From NCBI GenBank assembly GCA_020891255.1, contig BQFW01000011.1, forward strand, positions 1,922,001 to 1,986,000: a stretch of DNA of 64,000 nucleotides. Reading direction: 5' to 3'. The DNA is from Entomortierella parvispora E1425 (Eukaryota > Fungi > Mortierellomycota). The notes under the pieces are model-generated. The model searched no databases. It saw only the letters and a list, made by a program, of their open reading frames with translations, and was not told the DNA's origin. This document shows, in pieces, positions 29,943-48,545 of this stretch (the stretch's first letter is position 1; the number at the start of each line of letters is the position of its first letter). The translations under genes and the position numbers were made by a program.

Positions 29943-30287
29943 TTAGCACCCTCCTGGACACACCAAACAGCACACACCAAACAGCACACTCGAAGAAAAC
30001 TTTCTTTTGTTGTTGACATGTTGAGATTCAAACACAGACACACAGAGAGAGAGAGAGACGCTATATCCACGCACAGATACAGTCACGTGAACTATGACGT
30101 GTCTGCTAACTGTGCGAGGTAATAACGGTCTCCTCTCACTCGTCCTCCTCCCCACAAGGCCAAAAAGGAGTCCCAAAGAGAAAAAGCGCATCCGTCCATC
30201 CAACCATCTGCATCTCTTTTTTGCTCTCTGTTCTCCCTGTCTCGTTTTCATGCGCGCCTCAGAGTTGATGCCCATCCTCGACACTTG

Positions 30288-30548
30288 ATGACAAGCGCAA
30301 CAACCATGGCTGAGCAGCATTTCAATCCGGCCCTCTATCAGTCCTACTCCGCAGCTCCGTCGCCGACCGCTTCGCTTGTAGGACCTCCTACCTCATCTGG
30401 CTACAACATTGGCCAAGGCATGTCCATGTACAATGGAGGCCTACCCCGCTACCCCGTTCAACTTAACCTCGCCCAAAAGTTCCAGCAGCAACAGCAACAG
30501 CAACTCCAGCAACAGCAGCTTCAACAACAACAACAACTCCAGCTACAA

Positions 30549-30579
<31 letters not shown>

Positions 30580-32758
30580 AAATCCAGCACAACCAACACC
30601 AAATCCTGATCCGTCAGCCTCCTGGTGTATCGTCCCCTGCAAGCATCCCCGCATCCCTGACGCCCCAGCTAGGCCCTGGTACCTCCCACTACCAGCAGCA
30701 GGCCCACTACGCCAATGTCTCCCGTCAGTCTGCTGCCCCTCACTACCGGGCCAGAGCCGCGGCCGCTGTGGCAAGAAGCAGCAACATGAGCTCTGCCATC
30801 ACGATTACGGACCCCAACAACCCATCGAAAAGCAGCCCTAACGGTGAAGGTGACAAGAGTGGCGCTCAGGAAAGTGGCTCCCAACCCTGGACGACTCTTG
30901 ATCTTGGAGGCATGGGCCTCAAGAACATCAGCGCAGAACTGTTTCGATACTCGTTTTTGACCGCTCTCTATGTGAACCACAACAATCTGCACTACCTTTC
31001 ACCCGAGATCAGTCGTTTGACTGGCCTCACGATTTTGGATGCTTCTGGAAACAAGCTTACCTCAGTTCCTCCAGAGCTCGGGATGCTGACCAGCCTTCAG
31101 CAATTGCATTTGGTCGACAATGGGTTGGTGACCCTTCCAGCAGAGCTTGGAACCCTTTTTCAATTGGAGATTCTTGCACTGGAGGGCAATCCGTTGAACG
31201 AGAGTCTTAAGAATTTGCTCCAGCAGGAAGGAACCGGCGCCGTGATCAACTATCTTCGTGAAAACTGCCCTGGTATGTCCTATCACTCATATTTCCCTCA
31301 AGCTCCTTTTCTCCCCAAGGTCAACATTAACCATGAGATTGTTTTGTTTTATATCATACTAGTACCCTTGCCTCCACCAGAGAGAGAATGGATTACCCTT
31401 GAAGACGATTCTGGAGCATCATCGGGTCAAGACACGTTCACTATGTTTTGTTATAACATTCTTGCTGAAAACTATGCTACTCCCCAGATGTACGGATACA
31501 CGCCTTCTTGGGCTCTTACGTGGGAGTATCGCAAGGAACTTATTCTTCAAGAGATTTTGGCCTACAGTGCAGATATTGTCTGTCTTCAGGTAATATACCA
31601 CATGCCTCATTTCTTCTTTTGATCCATCTATCAACAACTCGACCGCTCATCCACCAATTGGTATCCGGTATTGTTTCTCTTTAGGAAATCGAGCTTGGAC
31701 AATACGAGGACTACTTCAAGGAGCAGATGAAACAGCAGGCAGATTACGATGGCATCTTCTGGCCAAAATCGCGTGCCAAGACTATGCCCGAAAAGGACCG
31801 CAGAGTTGTGGATGGATGTGCTACCTTCTTCAAGTCTTCCAAGTATGTTCACGCTCGTAGAGGCTGCGCCTTCAACAACGTAGCACATGCAAATGACTAA
31901 CTCATATGACTCGATTATTACATGTTGGGTATTGAATCCAATAGATTCAGCTTGATCGATAAACATCTTGTCGAATTCAACCACATTGCGCTGCAGCGTC
32001 CAGATTTCAGGAAAACCGAGGATATCTTCAATCGAGTGATGACCAAAGACAACATTGCAGTCATTGCCCTTTTGGAACATAAAGAGACCAAAAACAGGAT
32101 GGTGGTCTCGAACGCTCATATTCATTGGGACCCAACCTTCAAGGATGTCAAGTTGGTTCAAGTAGCCATGCTCATGGATGAGCTTGACAAGCTGTCAACC
32201 CAGTGGGCGCACTTGCCTGGAGCGAATGGGAAGACCTCAGCTCAAACCCAGGGCAAGCTCCCAACACTTATCTGTGGCGATTTCAACTCTGAGCCAGCGT
32301 CGGGTGTGCACGAATTTTTGACCAAGGGTCTGGTGGCGCAGGGTCACGACGATTTTGGAGACCATGCCTATGGTACCTATACCTCAGAAGGACTTGCACA
32401 CAAGATGTCGTTGCGTTCCTCATATAGCCATGTGGACGAGTTGCCGTTTACGAACTTCACTCCGTCGTTCACAGCCGTGATTGACTACATCTACTACTCT
32501 TCCAACTTTTTGTCGGTCTTGGGCCTGCTGGGAGGCGTTGAGCGCGAGTACATGAGTCGTGTCGTTGGCTTCCCCAACGCGCACTTCCCATCGGATCATA
32601 TTCCAATCCTGGCCGAGTTCAAGTTCCGGTCCCAATTGGCGTTGCCAACAACGGCGCCTGACTTTGGAGCTACCTCTGGAGGATCCAACAACAATAACCG
32701 AGGAAATGGTCGTAACAACAACAGCAACGGCAACAACAACAGCAGCAACAACAAGTGA
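30288..32758 (+). CDS. CCR4: CCR4-NOT deadenylase subunit Ccr4 (polyQ N-terminus, LRR, EEP nuclease), multi-exon
   Basis: LRRs (LDLGGMGL, LYVNHNNL, LDASGNKL); CYNILAENYAT, ADIVCLQ|EIE, ICGDFNS, IDYIYYS, FPSDH. Confidence 0.96.
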
Positions 32759-34365: not shown

Positions 34366-35131
34366 GATATCCTTGTGGGATGAACCGATGTCACCCTTCG
34401 TCCAACTCGCATGCAGACCGCTGCGTGGGCAGTTACAGTATCTCTGAAATATATCCTCTTCTAGCCATAGTATAAGTATAATATAAAAAAATCCAGCCTC
34501 CTTTGTTCAAAACAGCAATGGCAACGTATCCCTGGTGCTCTTCTCTCTTTCTTTCTCTCTCTCTCGCTCTCTGTTACTCCCTTTTTGATACTCGCTGAGC
34601 TGCAATCAGGATTGATGCCCTTTCTTTATTTTTTCATCTGCCTTTCGCCAGATCGCTCCTTCATTCTCTCCGTTCTTCTTGTCGAAGCTTTGAGTTTTAG
34701 CCGAGAGATGAGAAAAGGAAAGCAGACCTGCCCTATCAAGACAGCTTTCGTTCGCGTAATGTTTTCACGGAGATGCACGATCTTATGGACAATTGGTTCA
34801 AGACTGGGATGCTGCACAGTTTTTCATGTTCTGTGACCACCCCCCCAACACGGAGAAATGCAAGGGCTGACTCCGATCTCGAAAACCAAAAAAAAAAAAA
34901 AAAAAAAAAAATCTCGAGAGTGCTGCCCGATCTCCTTGTGGTTGAGTGATCTAGAAGTTCGTTTCGTGAGCGGTTTGTGCGAGTGCCTCACCAATGCTCT
35001 CATTCTTGGTCAGCGGTGTAGTGAAGGCGTCTCCAGAAGCCAACGTATAAATATACGAGCTGTGTCCATCATCTTGCTCCTCAGTTTTTTTTGGTAAATA
35101 ACTTACCCCTTCCTTTCCAAGACTTTTGAGA

Positions 35132-37730
35132 ATGAATCCAGCATCTGCCTCTGCCCAAGCTCGTTTACAAGTGATCCACCAACATTTGTCGATCCAGCCT
35201 TGTTTTCACCGCCATGCCATCGACAACGACAAGCCCACAGGTCCAGCGGACCTAGCTCGTGAACGCGCCAATGCCTCCTTCAAGGTGGAGGATATGACCG
35301 AGATCCTCTTTGGTGGAAAAGAGAATGTTGTGGCCCGGGTATGCAAACTACTGTACTTGAAGCCATAACTCTCACAATGGGTGAAAAGCTCAAAACACTG
35401 ACATTTGAAAACACCCTTATTTTTTTTTTTTTTTTTTTTCTTGTTGGATTCTGTCAATCCAGTCGCTTGCTTTCCAAATGATTCAACGCGACCCAGATCT
35501 TCGGATGCGCCAGGGTCACAACTACGATATGAGTCGAAGTGAGGAGCGAGAGCAGACTCTGCGTCAAGTCGCTCGCTTGATCCAGCTACGAAGAATGCCG
35601 GGTAACAACCTTTTGAGTAGGGCTCTAACCATGGCTATGTCCTACTACTCCGAAGCTTTTTGGATGATGTTTGTCCACGACGTGTTGTTCAAACAGGCGT
35701 TCACGTACTGTGCAACCCCCGAGCAGCAGGACAAGTGGATGGCCGATATCGAGGATTGGAGGGTGATGGGTTGCTTTGCTATGGTAAGTTGGTTTTTTTT
35801 CTTTCTTTGTGCTACTGTCGACCTTTTTTTTTTTTTTGCTGATATCGGCGACTCTTGCCCCATTTAGACGGAGCTTGGACATTCCTCCAACCTGCCTGGG
35901 TTGGAGACGACCTCGACCTTTGATCGCTCTACGGACGAGTTTGTTATCCATTCGCCCACGCAAACCTCAACCAAGTGGTGGATTGGAATGGCGGGTCGAA
36001 CAGCCACTCACACGGGTAAGTCCGCAACTTCCCCTTCTTTAACGTTCACAAGAGAGCGGAGGTTTGCTCCACCCCCCAGAAGCGAGAATGGATGATGCAG
36101 GAACAACAAATAAAAAAAAACATAAGAAAGGAGGCTCTCTCACAGACAAGGCGATGATTGGCCTTCTCAACTCTCATCCCATCTTTCTTCTTTCCAATCT
36201 GCAATAGTTGCAATGTGCCGAACCCTTGTTGATGGCAAAGACTATGGCCCCAATTGGTTCTATGTTCCCTTGCGTGACCGAAAGACTGGCCACCTCCTTC
36301 CAGGGATCGTGTGCGGTGATGTTGGCCAAAAAGCCTCACGCCAAGGCCTTGACACGGGTTACATCCAATTCACCCAAGTCCGAATCCCTCGGGGGAACAT
36401 GTTGCAGCGATGGGCTTCTTTTACTCCTCAGGGGGTATTCAAGCCCTCTCCCAACCCAGTTCTGGCATACTCGCCACTGACCACGGAACGATTTGCAACC
36501 CTGAATTCCCACAAGGTGACTCTCGCACAGAGCTTGACCATTGCCGTCCGCTACGGGGCTGTCCGCCGCCAAGGAACTCGTGACGAGCAGATTATCGATT
36601 ACCAAACCCACCAGGCGAACCTGATGCCCGGGCTAGCGTTCATCCACCTGTTGAGCATTGTTGAACGCGACGTTTGCGAAAAGTGGGATGAGGTCCAAGA
36701 AATGGCCCACACGAACGTGGAACAGTTTTTGCACGAGTTGCCGGACCAACATGGGATCGCGGCCAGTTTCAAAGCCGCCCTGTCGTGGTATGTGACGGAG
36801 GCGCTCGAGTCCTGTCGTCGATCCTGTGGCGGGCACGCGTACTCGGCCTACAACGCTTTCCCGGGATTAATAGGTGACTACAATATCGTTACGATCGGTG
36901 GAGGAGATAACGTCGTGCTCATGCAGCAGTCGGCTCGGTACTTGATCTCATCACTCAAAAAGGCCATGACAGGTCATCAGGTTCATGGATCTGTCGATTA
37001 CATGAATGCACACATGTATTTCTCCTCAGTTACCAAGACAAGTTTCCAGGACCCTCGAGACTTGCTCAACCATGAGTTTTTCATCGATGCTTTGACCTGG
37101 GCATGTCTCAAGAAAGCAACTGGACTGAAAAAGGTCCTGGAGAACGCCGGCACCCACTTTGAGGAAGTTTGGATTGAAAACCAAACAGAGTTGATACGCT
37201 TGGCCGATATCAACACATGGCGATATTTCCTTGTGGTATTCCATCGAGTTATTGAGCGCGAGAAGGAAAGAAAGCCAGAGGTGTACGCGCTATTCAAAAG
37301 GATGGGGCTGCTTATGGGCACATTTATCCTCAAGCGATATATGGATGTATTCTTGGAAGAGGGCTATTTCGATGGCTCGCATGCCAAGTTTATCCGTGAG
37401 TTACACTTGGATCAGTGCAAGGATTTAAGAAAGGAAGCGGTCGCGTTGGTAGACTCTTGGGCGATTCCAGACTTTGCACTGCAGGCACCCATTGGAAAGT
37501 ATGATGGAGACATCTACCCGGCCTACTTTGCAGCGGTGAATGCGGCCCAACAGTCGTTTGAGCCGACGGATTATTGGCTCAAGTACGCTGGCCCATTGTT
37601 GAACGCGCCGCGACCGACCGACAAGGAGCCAATTGCCCCCCATTCACACGTTGATCAGCCCACCTCCGTCACAAACAGGAAAAAGGCAAGAGTTCCCATG
37701 GAGAAGGAGAACGATGCTCTTTGGGTCTGA
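35132..37730 (+). CDS. Peroxisomal acyl-CoA oxidase family protein with N-terminal PTS2, 4 exons
   Basis: GCFAM|[60 protein letters not shown]-terminal [11 protein letters not shown]. Confidence 0.93.
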
Positions 37731-40253: not shown

Positions 40254-41156
40254 ATGTCCTCTCTCCACGCCGCAGCCAGTTCACTGCTTTCCCTTGCCTC
40301 TCTTGCCTCTTCCTCTGCCCCTATCCGCGCTGCTGCTGCTCCCAAGCAGAAGCGTCAACCTTCCTCTGCTGCATCCTTGACCAGAAGCGGATCGGATGCC
40401 CCTCGTCCTTACAAGTGCCACATCTGCCCTAAATCCTTCCACCGCCTTGAACATCAGACCCGTCACATCCGCACCCACACGGGCGAGCGTCCCCATCAAT
40501 GCACGTTCTTGACCTGCCAAAAGCGCTTCTCGCGCTCGGATGAGTTGACCCGCCACATGCGAATTCACACCACGACAAAGACAAAGAAGGAAAGGGCCTC
40601 TCCCGCTGCCAAGGCTCCTTCTGCTTCACCTAGCCGAAGCGTTAGCCCACCTGCCCATGTCTCGATCAAGCCCTTCATGAAGGTCGTTATGGTGGCGTTC
40701 GAGGGTGAAGAGGACAATGATTATCACTTGCCCTCGCCCACCACTTCGCCTCGTATGTCCTCGACCTCTGCCGTCTCGCCAAGAGCATCGCCCTACCCAA
40801 TGGTCGCCAAGAAGCGTGTTGTCCAGCAACAGCAGCAGCAGCAGCAGCAGCAGCACTCACCCCCTGCCTCTGCCAACTCGTCGCCTGTGTCGATGATCAT
40901 GTCAGACTGCGAATCCGATGCTTCGGCCTCGCCCTTGTTCACACCAGAATCATCGCCTGTGCCTGCTCCTTCCATGGTGACCTCCACACCTGCTTCATTG
41001 GCCTACTTCTCGGTCAAGGCCGTGTCAGGTCCTTTGTTCAAGTCAGCGCAACCCCAACAGTCAGAGTTCCCTACCTTGGCTCCTTTGTACTCGAGCGGTC
41101 GCCAGTCGATGAACTTGCCCCCGATCTCCATGATCATGGACTCTCTCTACCAATAA
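40254..41156 (+). CDS. creA: C2H2 zinc-finger carbon catabolite repressor, CreA/Mig1 family, intronless
   Basis: [48 protein letters not shown]; C-terminal LPPI effector-like motif. Confidence 0.9.
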
Positions 41157-46708: not shown

Positions 46709-46928
46709 TTCTGTTTACTGTCAGTCCTGGGTCCTGTGCGAATCGAGTGGATGCAAAATCAACGATGCCATCAATCCATGTCCACCAGGCAAGAAATTCA
46801 ACGAGCCAATATGCACGTGATTTCGATCTGCGCCCGCCCGCGAGGCCCGTTCCCATGGCATGCCTGGAAGCATGCGATGCATGCACACAGCATTGTTCCG
46901 ACACCCACGCCCATCCAGCTGTGCTGTC

Positions 46929-48545
46929 ATGTTCACCCGCTTTGCTAAAAGGACAACGACCTCTACCTCTTCTTATTCCTTCTTCCTTCACTCCTCGTTC
47001 CCACGCCGCACTCAAGTTCTCCCCCGATCCTTCGCTGCATTTTACTCTTCAACCAACATGTCTCCCACGTTCACCATCAACTCGACCACAGGCTCGGGCA
47101 CGTTCCCGCACTTTGTTGGCCCCTTCATCGATGGCTCTTTCCAGCCCACGCTTTCCCCTTCGCCTGCCACTCGCGCGTTGCTCAATCCCTGCTCTGAGGA
47201 GCTCATCGTCAACGTGAACGAAGCTGGGCCCGAGGACGTCGATCAGGCCGTCAAGGTCGCTCAGGCCGCCCTCAAGGGTCCTTGGAAGGACTTCACAGGC
47301 AGAAAGCGTCGAGACATTCTGCTCTCCATTGCGAACGTTGTCGAATCTCATATCAAGGACCTGACGCTGCTCGAGGCCGCCTGCGGAAAACCCTATGCGG
47401 AAGCTCGATTGGACATTGAGGAGGTCATCGAATGCTTCCGTCACTTTGCTGGATTCGCGGACAAGCTCCATGGTCAGAGCTTTGCTACCGAAGAGAACCT
47501 CAAGTCGTACACTCTCCGCAAGCCCGTTGGAGTGTGTGGTCTGATCACTTCATTCAACTACCCTTTGGTGCTCGCGGCCTGGAAGATCGCTCCTGCCCTG
47601 GCTTGCGGCAACACGATCATTCTCAAGCCCGCCCCCCAAACGCCTCTTTCATCGCTGATGTTTGGGCAACTCATTGCCAAACATACAGAGTTGCCCAAGG
47701 GCGTGCTCAATGTCCTTCCTGGAGGAGAAGCTGTAGGAAGTGCCATTGTCAGCCACATGGGGATCCAGAAGTGCAGCTTCACTGGGTCTGGCAATGTTGG
47801 TCGCAAAGTTATGGCTGGTGCCTCGAGCAGTAACCTGAAGTCGATCACGTTGGAGCTCGGCGGCAAGAGTCCTCTGATCGTCTTTGCAGACGCTGATTTG
47901 GATGTGGTCGTTGAGGACGTGTTTGGAGCCATCTTTTCCAACATGGGCCAGAACTGTTGTGCTGGTTCCCGCCTGTTCTTGGAGAAGGGCATCGAGGAGG
48001 ATTTCTTGAAGAAGTTGAAGGCCCGTGTGGAGCAGGTCAAGATTGGTAATACGTTGGATCCTCAATATGACTTTGGCGCCTTGGTGGATCGCGCCCAGTT
48101 CGAGCGAGTCATGGGTTTCTTTGAGAGAGCTAAGAAGGAGGGCAAATCCGAGCTGGTGGTTGGAGGTAAGCGCCATGGAAGCAAGGGATACTTTGTGGAA
48201 CCGACCATCTACCGCAACGTGGACGAGAAATCCACCCTGGCGGTCGATGAGATCTTTGGTCCTGTTCTCTCCATCATGAAGCCCTTCAGCACTATTGAGG
48301 AGGCCCTTGAGCGCGCCAATGCGACCCCCTACGGCTTGGCCTCGGGTGTCTGGACCAAGGACCTGAGCAAAGCTGAACGATGCATCCAAGAACTGCAGAC
48401 AGGCGTGACATGGGTGAATACCTACAACCTGTGCTCGAGCCACTTGCCTTTTGGAGGAGTGAAGGAGAGTGGAATCGGAAAGGATCTCGGGGCTGCCTCC
48501 CTGGACGAGTACACGAGGGTGAAGGCTGTCACTATTCGCGTGTAG
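46929..48545 (+). CDS. NAD(P)+-dependent aldehyde dehydrogenase (ALDH1/2-like), intronless; second in-frame ATG at 47058
   Basis: PVGVCGLITSFNYP, KPAPQTP, FTGS, catalytic LELGGKSP and GQNCCAG, EIFGPV, PFGGVKESG. Confidence 0.95.
   Translation: MFTRFAKRTTTSTSSYSFFLHSSFPRRTQVLPRSFAAFYSSTNMSPTFTINSTTGSGTFPHFVGPFIDGSFQPTLSPSPATRALLNPCSEELIVNVNEAGPEDVDQAVKVAQAALKGPWKDFTGRKRRDILLSIANVVESHIKDLTLLEAACGKPYAEARLDIEEVIECFRHFAGFADKLHGQSFATEENLKSYTLRKPVGVCGLITSFNYPLVLAAWKIAPALACGNTIILKPAPQTPLSSLMFGQLIAKHTELPKGVLNVLPGGEAVGSAIVSHMGIQKCSFTGSGNVGRKVMAGASSSNLKSITLELGGKSPLIVFADADLDVVVEDVFGAIFSNMGQNCCAGSRLFLEKGIEEDFLKKLKARVEQVKIGNTLDPQYDFGALVDRAQFERVMGFFERAKKEGKSELVVGGKRHGSKGYFVEPTIYRNVDEKSTLAVDEIFGPVLSIMKPFSTIEEALERANATPYGLASGVWTKDLSKAERCIQELQTGVTWVNTYNLCSSHLPFGGVKESGIGKDLGAASLDEYTRVKAVTIRV

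Follow-up and report, generated by a model that had tools for sequence, protein, structure and literature searches.

Analysis of a 64,000-nucleotide stretch of the genome of the fungus Entomortierella parvispora E1425 (contig BQFW01000011.1, positions 1,922,001 to 1,986,000 of the forward strand; hereinafter the window, from the first letter of which all coordinates are counted) points to an acyl-CoA oxidase (ACOX) whose catalytic base appears to have migrated to a different structural element. The gene (35132-37730, plus strand, four exons) encodes a protein of 732 amino acids that is present in the database under the name 'acyl-CoA oxidase [Entomortierella parvispora]' (P0001). This protein contains glycine in place of the catalytic glutamate in the loop that connects helix J with helix K and carries a glutamate, Glu319, on the upstream helix G, at the position that is occupied by the base in isovaleryl-CoA dehydrogenase (IVD) and in LCAD (the long-chain acyl-CoA dehydrogenase). 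We assign a probability of about 0.75 to the reading under which the gene codes for an intact, flavin adenine dinucleotide (FAD)-dependent peroxisomal acyl-CoA oxidase, imported via a type 2 peroxisomal targeting signal (PTS2), that belongs to an old eukaryotic subfamily with a migrated base and employs Glu319 as that base. The role of Glu319, the oxidase identity of the enzyme and its substrate, discussed below, are all three what we infer from sequence comparison and modeling.

Both sites are encoded in the reading frame of the fourth exon (36213-37727, plus strand), within the ACOX C-alpha1 domain that spans helices G to K (36468-36947; PF22924 over residues 86-245 of the translation of the exon-4 open reading frame (ORF)). 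On helix G, the codons GAA (36486-36488) and CGA (36489-36491) specify Glu319 and the family-invariant Arg320, and in the J-K loop, GGT GGA GGA GAT AAC (36897-36911) specifies Gly456, Gly457, Gly458, Asp459 and Asn460. A phmmer search against solved structures aligned the TIGGGDNVV segment of the protein with TFEGENTVM of rat ACOX1 (PDB 1is2), and YSPLTTERF with YGTMVFVRS, in both cases without gaps, so that Gly457 (36900-36902) falls on the rat catalytic Glu421, and Glu319 falls on the valine that precedes the conserved arginine. In the same search, the corresponding positions of Yarrowia ACOX3 and ACOX1 read TWEGDNNVL and GGR. The canonical J-K-loop motif, aromatic-E-G-[DE]-N, is accordingly broken: its glutamate is found in 97% of the canonical ACOXs and in 0% of the subfamily to which the Entomortierella protein belongs. 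The change at this site is double, as it is in IVD, with Gly456 replacing the residue before the canonical glutamate, which is aromatic in ACOX1; across the family, position 456 is glycine in the swapped group (those proteins that have glutamate on helix G and lack it in the loop) and mostly tryptophan, tyrosine, alanine, valine or leucine in canonical proteins, with glycine in three representatives that retain the canonical glutamate. An alignment of 151 family representatives made with MAFFT and a profile-profile comparison with IVD made with hhalign concur on both sites. The original prediction, based on the DNA sequence alone, placed glycine at the catalytic glutamate site and a glutamate before the arginine of the upstream helix; phmmer, MAFFT and hhalign agree with this placement, and its coordinates, codons and ACOX1 alignment proved right upon translation, codon check and comparison with 1is2.

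In all known acyl-CoA dehydrogenases (ACADs) except for LCAD and IVD, the base resides in the J-K loop, whereas in these two enzymes, a helix-G glutamate is topologically equivalent to the canonical base, or 'topologically conserved' in three dimensions, according to a structural paper of 2024 (PMC10925408). In human LCAD, the base is Glu291 of the precursor (Glu261 of the mature protein), with the carboxylate located 2.8 A from the substrate C-alpha; glycine occupies the canonical site, Gly412 polarises the thioester, and a larger pocket accommodates bulky or branched substrates (PMC10925408). To compare the subfamily with such enzymes, 57 diverse members (alignment A1) were aligned by hhalign against a set of ACADs (alignment A2) that consisted of Escherichia coli CaiA, the annotated IVDs of Sinorhizobium meliloti pSymB and Mycetohabitans, and one isobutyryl-CoA dehydrogenase. 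Both IVD genes adjoin a methylcrotonoyl-CoA carboxylase gene, and the Sinorhizobium protein, which is the sequence of PDB 4kto, matches human IVD (1ivh) with E=2e-163; helix G of this protein contains the motif L-D-Y-E-R, and the sequence around the canonical site is E-I-G-A-G-T-S-E. The two profiles match with a probability of 97.6% over 293 columns, and the alignment places Glu319-Arg320 on the Glu-Arg of the IVD Y-E-R and Gly456-Gly457-Gly458 on the Gly-Ala-Gly of G-A-G-T-S. The suggestion that the helix-G glutamate occupies the LCAD/IVD position is thus borne out by its alignment with the catalytic glutamate of a bona fide IVD.

The Entomortierella protein shares with IVD (human 1ivh and Sinorhizobium 4kto) both distinctive features, namely, a glutamate directly preceding the conserved arginine on helix G, and glycine or alanine at the canonical base position, within Gly-Ala-Gly in IVD as opposed to the aromatic-Glu-Gly of other members; indeed, some members of the subfamily read G-A-G-D-N. 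The sequence kinship is nevertheless remote (22% identity in the hhalign alignment), and IVD is a mitochondrial tetrameric dehydrogenase of about 390 residues that passes electrons to the electron-transferring flavoprotein and lacks the N-terminal and C-terminal domains of ACOX. More generally, ACADs proper consist of three domains and about 380-430 residues, whereas the protein in question, with 732 residues, includes PF14749 and PF01756 and is nested inside the ACOX tree. Human LCAD (8w0t/8w0z) similarly combines a helix-G base with glycine at the canonical site but is a mitochondrial dehydrogenase in which the swap is of independent origin. LCAD retains the tyrosine that precedes the canonical site. 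The same exchange of two positions was introduced in the laboratory into medium-chain acyl-CoA dehydrogenase (MCAD), and Nandy et al. and Lee et al. are said to have found in 1996 that the resulting T255E/E376G double mutant (PDB 1egc/1egd) is active, which makes the relocation mechanistically viable. This construct is an engineered dehydrogenase, in contrast to the natural and ancient swap in the oxidase branch. Within the ACAD set, we also observed that crotonobetainyl-CoA reductase of E. coli K-12 (caiA; L001:745-1887, minus strand) has the helix-G motif D-H-E-R, with S-G-G-S-D-E where the canonical base would be located. This is the arrangement of IVD, and therefore, the relocated base may extend beyond LCAD and IVD among the ACADs.

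An exhaustive HMMER search of 1.84 billion cluster representatives (50% identity) produced 2795 matches at E<1e-10, of which the best 150 were tabulated together with the query. Among these 151 representatives, 115 possess only the canonical glutamate, 26 combine the helix-G glutamate with glycine at position 457, 6 have the helix-G glutamate but end before position 457, 3 have aspartate at the canonical site without the helix-G glutamate, and one has glutamate at both sites; none (0 of 151) lacks an acid at both. Among the best 120 homologues, E-R and G-[GAS]-G-D-N occur together in every sequence that covers both sites, with position 457 being glycine or alanine, apart from a sole serine in P0003, and in total, 138 homologues share the motifs. 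In the alignment of the 57 diverse members, Glu319, Arg320, Gly456, Gly458, Asp459 and Asn460 are invariant; this invariance, together with the pairing in every covering homologue, indicates that the combination of the two changes is not due to chance. The proposed paired loss and gain of glutamate accordingly appears as a strict trait of a monophyletic, widely distributed subfamily in the alignment and the tree, and the helix-G glutamate, the lack of conservation of which among proteins with the GGGDN-type loop would have spoken against a relocated base, does not vary among the 57 members. Every part of the original prediction that can be tested in silico came out as proposed and is supported.

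Several individual sequences depart from the two prevailing states. The three proteins with aspartate at the catalytic position, from Fonticula alba (P0178), Cavostelium apophysatum (P0132) and an environmental sample (P0146), share T-W-D-G-D-N and Ala-Arg on helix G and are located in three separate places of the tree. The only sequence with both glutamates, from Rhizopus microsporus (CEG77565.1, 528 amino acids; P0151), has P-E-R as its helix-G motif and V-G-E-G-D-D as its loop motif. This fast-evolving paralogue is truncated at the N-terminus, shares 55% identity with the regular R. microsporus member of the subfamily (P0109) and could represent either a copy in decay or a naturally occurring 'double-base' state. 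The proteins P0131 (Balamuthia mandrillaris), P0160 and P0236 retain the canonical glutamate but have glycine before it, in T-G-E-G-D-N or P-G-E-G-D-A, and carry Gly-Arg at the helix-G site; this configuration may resemble the state before the swap.

In a maximum likelihood tree of 129 near-full-length representatives, which was constructed after removal of the trait columns, all 20 of the 20 swapped sequences are found on one side of a branch with an SH-aLRT (Shimodaira-Hasegawa-like approximate likelihood ratio test) value of 94. This branch lies inside a clade (support 100) of fungal-type ACOXs of the Yarrowia type, characterised by G-G-R (helix G) and T-W-E-G-D-N (loop). The swapped proteins therefore are one old branch of fungal-type ACOXs with a single origin: since most ACADs and both sides of the tree show the canonical state, the swapped state is derived and has arisen once within ACOX. 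The named members come from five early-diverging fungal phyla (Mortierellomycota, Glomeromycota, Mucoromycota, Chytridiomycota and Blastocladiomycota, the latter represented by Sorochytrium and Catenaria) and from Amoebozoa (Balamuthia, Protostelium), and the subfamily is also represented in eukaryotic contigs and transcripts of environmental origin; Dikarya, animals and plants are absent among the named members. Transcriptome assemblies, for example, that of Protostelium nocturnum, contribute several of the sequences. Canonical paralogues are encoded by the same organisms, as with P0136 and P0018 in Actinomortierella, and P0129 and P0096 in Protostelium.

The rest of the protein retains the hallmarks of an acyl-CoA oxidase. 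The exons were searched individually, and the database protein was used for full-length comparisons; a splice model with three GT-AG introns (124, 84 and 192 nucleotides) yields exactly the sequence of the database protein, as verified by script. Exon 1 (35132-35338, plus strand, as are all features of this gene) encodes residues 1-69; exon 2 (35463-35783) encodes residues 70-176 with the Acyl-CoA_ox_N domain (PF14749, E=3.5e-13); exon 3 (35868-36015) encodes residues 177-225 plus one nucleotide, including the beginning of the middle beta domain with T-E-L-G-H-S-S; and exon 4 (36208-37730) encodes residues 226-732 and the stop codon, thus covering the remainder of the beta domain, the C-alpha1 domain (PF22924, E=2.8e-41) and the ACOX-specific C-terminal helical domain (PF01756, E=9.3e-34; 37074-37604, residues 288-464 of the exon-4 translation). 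The precomputed Pfam set of the full-length protein (PF14749, PF02770, PF22924, PF01756) represents the complete ACOX architecture, with Acyl-CoA_ox_N, Acyl-CoA_dh_M, ACOX_C_alpha1 and the ACOX C-terminal domain. Long runs of A or T are located 5' of the gene and inside its introns (approximately 34860-35900) and give rise to poly-Lys and poly-Phe in spurious ORFs.

The protein retains 65 of the 78 positions that are conserved in at least 85% of the canonical ACOXs, and only two of these 78, Gly182 and Glu457, are replaced throughout the subfamily. When discriminating columns were defined as those with one residue in at least 90% of the swapped group and the same residue in at most 10% of the canonical ACOXs, only five were detected, namely, Ser182, Glu319, Thr454, Gly456 and Gly457; these map to the start of helix G, the J-K loop and the G-H-G-S loop and are not scattered. 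The small number of discriminating columns and the retention of the scaffold identify this as the remodelling of a few sites rather than decay. Ser182 (35883-35885) is a third hallmark of the subfamily, in which G-H-S-S is always present (serine in 100% of the swapped representatives), as opposed to the canonical G-H-G-S, with glycine in 99% of the canonical representatives; by homology to E-P-G-A-G-S-D of the ACADs, this loop is probably located near the flavin. In the AlphaFold2 model of the protein (pLDDT, the predicted local distance difference test score, 86.8; pTM, the predicted template modeling score, 0.86), Glu319 belongs to helix 315-344, and Gly456-Gly457 belong to the loop that separates helix 443-453 from helix 458-479. 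In a Foldseek comparison of this model, the top 33 matches are all solved ACOX structures, with TM scores of 0.74-0.84 when normalized by the model and 0.85-0.91 when normalized by the target. The N-terminal nonapeptide R-L-Q-V-I-H-Q-H-L (residues 11-19; 35162-35188) matches the PTS2-like pattern R[LVIQ]x5[HQ][LAFIV] and is, by this pattern match, a putative peroxisomal targeting signal; among the 112 full-length members of the subfamily, 60 contain an N-terminal PTS2-like pattern and 36 others end with a tripeptide resembling the type 1 signal, such as S-K-L (96 of 112 in total). Thus, the protein shares with the canonical ACOXs (Yarrowia lipolytica ACOX3, 5ys9, and ACOX1, 5y9d; rat ACOX1, 1is2; Arabidopsis ACX1, 1w07) the four-domain architecture, the fold (TM 0.8-0.9), most of the near-invariant residues and the predicted peroxisomal targeting, and differs from them in the replacement of the catalytic glutamate (Glu421 in rat) and of the preceding aromatic residue by glycine, in the gain of the helix-G glutamate before the invariant arginine, and in the change of G-H-G-S to G-H-S-S. 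Its architecture, fold and phylogeny plainly make the protein an ACOX; it lacks one defining feature of that family, the J-K-loop glutamate, and most likely works in the manner of IVD and LCAD.

The absence of the canonical base might, alternatively, indicate a dead pseudo-enzyme, that is, an ACOX scaffold recruited for a structural or regulatory role or as a heterodimer partner, with Glu319 conserved for non-catalytic reasons. A non-catalytic partner is conceivable, given that ACOXs are dimeric and canonical paralogues coexist with the swapped ones in the same organisms. However, the loss of one glutamate is always matched by a glutamate in exactly the IVD/LCAD position, the near-invariant residues of canonical ACOXs are kept, and the five discriminating columns are confined to the beginning of helix G and to two loops, J-K and G-H-G-S, unlike scattered decay; these points render inactivity quite improbable. 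Somewhat less improbable, although still unlikely, is an active enzyme that relies on another base, such as Asp459 of G-D-N, or on other chemistry, as in a dehydrogenase with a different electron acceptor or an enzyme acting on a substrate other than acyl-CoA. The three canonical-type representatives with T-W-D-G-D-N imply that the family tolerates other acids, and reactivity with O2 is not readable from sequence; yet Asp459 is not a compensating gain, since aspartate or glutamate is equally conserved at this position in the canonical ACOXs (E-G-D/E-N), and Glu319, the sole newly gained acid among the discriminating columns, coincides with the proven base of IVD (hhalign alignment; PMC10925408).

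The third possibility to consider, that the relocation is an artefact of alignment or of the gene model, deserved attention because the original prediction was drawn from the sequence alone and the gene is spliced. It has a negligible probability and can be considered ruled out: three independent alignment methods are concordant, one exon encodes both sites, GT-AG splicing yields a protein identical to that in the database, and the motifs recur in 138 homologues. Two considerations temper the assignment of a migrated base to an active oxidase. Because the pairing goes back to one evolutionary event in ACOX, the count of co-occurrences does not amount to many independent trials; and the Entomortierella protein belongs to a more divergent line of Mortierellaceae paralogues, with Ile455 and Thr275 at positions that are threonine in 85% and asparagine in 80% of the subfamily, respectively.

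If Glu319 is indeed the base, the enzyme would be imported into peroxisomes via its PTS2 and would bind FAD and acyl-CoA; Glu319 on helix G would abstract the pro-R alpha-proton of the substrate, a hydride would move from C-beta to the flavin N5, and the flavin would be reoxidised by O2, yielding H2O2, as in other ACOXs. The backbone of the glycine-rich J-K loop probably still polarises the thioester, by analogy with Gly412 of LCAD (PMC10925408). The Gly-Gly-Gly loop probably also makes the pocket wider near the substrate atoms C2-C3. In IVD, glycine at the aromatic site and the moved base reportedly make space for the branched substrate, an observation attributed to Tiffany et al. in 1997. 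Because Gly456 matches the very change that sets IVD apart (G-A-G versus aromatic-E-G), a preference of the subfamily for branched or bulky acyl-CoAs is plausible by analogy. The more specific proposal is a peroxisomal oxidase with an IVD-like pocket, formed by the helix-G base and glycine at the aromatic site, and with a specialisation for acyl-CoAs that are branched or otherwise bulky, for example, isovaleryl-CoA, methyl-branched or isoprenoid-derived ones; this proposal is tentative, and we consider it rather doubtful in this form.

The genes adjoining the ACOX gene in the window encode a P-type ATPase, a leucine-rich repeat protein (30285-31622, plus strand), a fragment of an exo/endonuclease-phosphatase, a C2H2 zinc-finger protein (40254-41156, plus strand) and an aldehyde dehydrogenase (46860-48545, plus strand); these neighbours give no indication of a metabolic cluster. 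The aldehyde dehydrogenase was considered as a candidate methylmalonate-semialdehyde dehydrogenase, a function in keeping with a branched-chain cluster, but this assignment was rejected: the protein is of the ALDH1/2 type, the best matches in the PDB being ALDH1B1 and ALDH2 (E about 1e-129). No functional clue came from the gene context of two environmental homologues on eukaryotic contigs either, the neighbours being unrelated. The segment 26940-29636 of the window contains two overlapping ORFs of 876 amino acids on opposite strands, of which the plus-strand one encodes the P-type ATPase (E1-E2 ATPase and HAD hydrolase domains), whereas the minus-strand one has no Pfam match and is probably a mirror ORF. 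A compact, apparently intron-poor eukaryotic metagenome contig (L005:1-3783, minus strand) that carries a member of the subfamily (P0157) also encodes a 2149-residue Rpb2 subunit of RNA polymerase II with a faint LAGLIDADG match, possibly an intein.

Searches of the open-access full-text literature, including papers on lipid genes of Mucoromycota, yielded no description of an ACOX with a displaced base, although one in an older subscription paper is possible; in the case of the published ACOX knockout in Mucor, the paralogue that was removed is not stated. Databases label the proteins of the subfamily simply as 'acyl-CoA oxidase' and do not flag the missing canonical glutamate. That a catalytic base can migrate inside a single fold is known as a curiosity from textbooks, and precedents within the superfamily limit the surprise; the present case adds a natural, ancient and independently evolved example in the oxidase branch. 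If the proposed specialised oxidase is real, the oxidase half of the superfamily would thereby have its first natural case of a migrated base, in convergence with IVD and LCAD. Either exchange between glutamate and glycine can be achieved by a single A/G transition (Glu319 is encoded by GAA and Gly457 by GGA), and a natural variant possesses both acids; therefore, the path of active-site migration is testable with swap and back-swap mutants. A specialisation of the subfamily for branched or bulky acyl-CoAs would, furthermore, imply a peroxisomal route of branched-chain catabolism in early-diverging fungi and amoebae that this analysis did not detect in Dikarya, animals or plants. More generally, the subfamily draws attention to an activity, as yet uncharacterised, in the peroxisomes of oleaginous and mycorrhizal fungi, such as Mortierella, Mucor and Glomeromycota, that are used or studied for their lipid metabolism.

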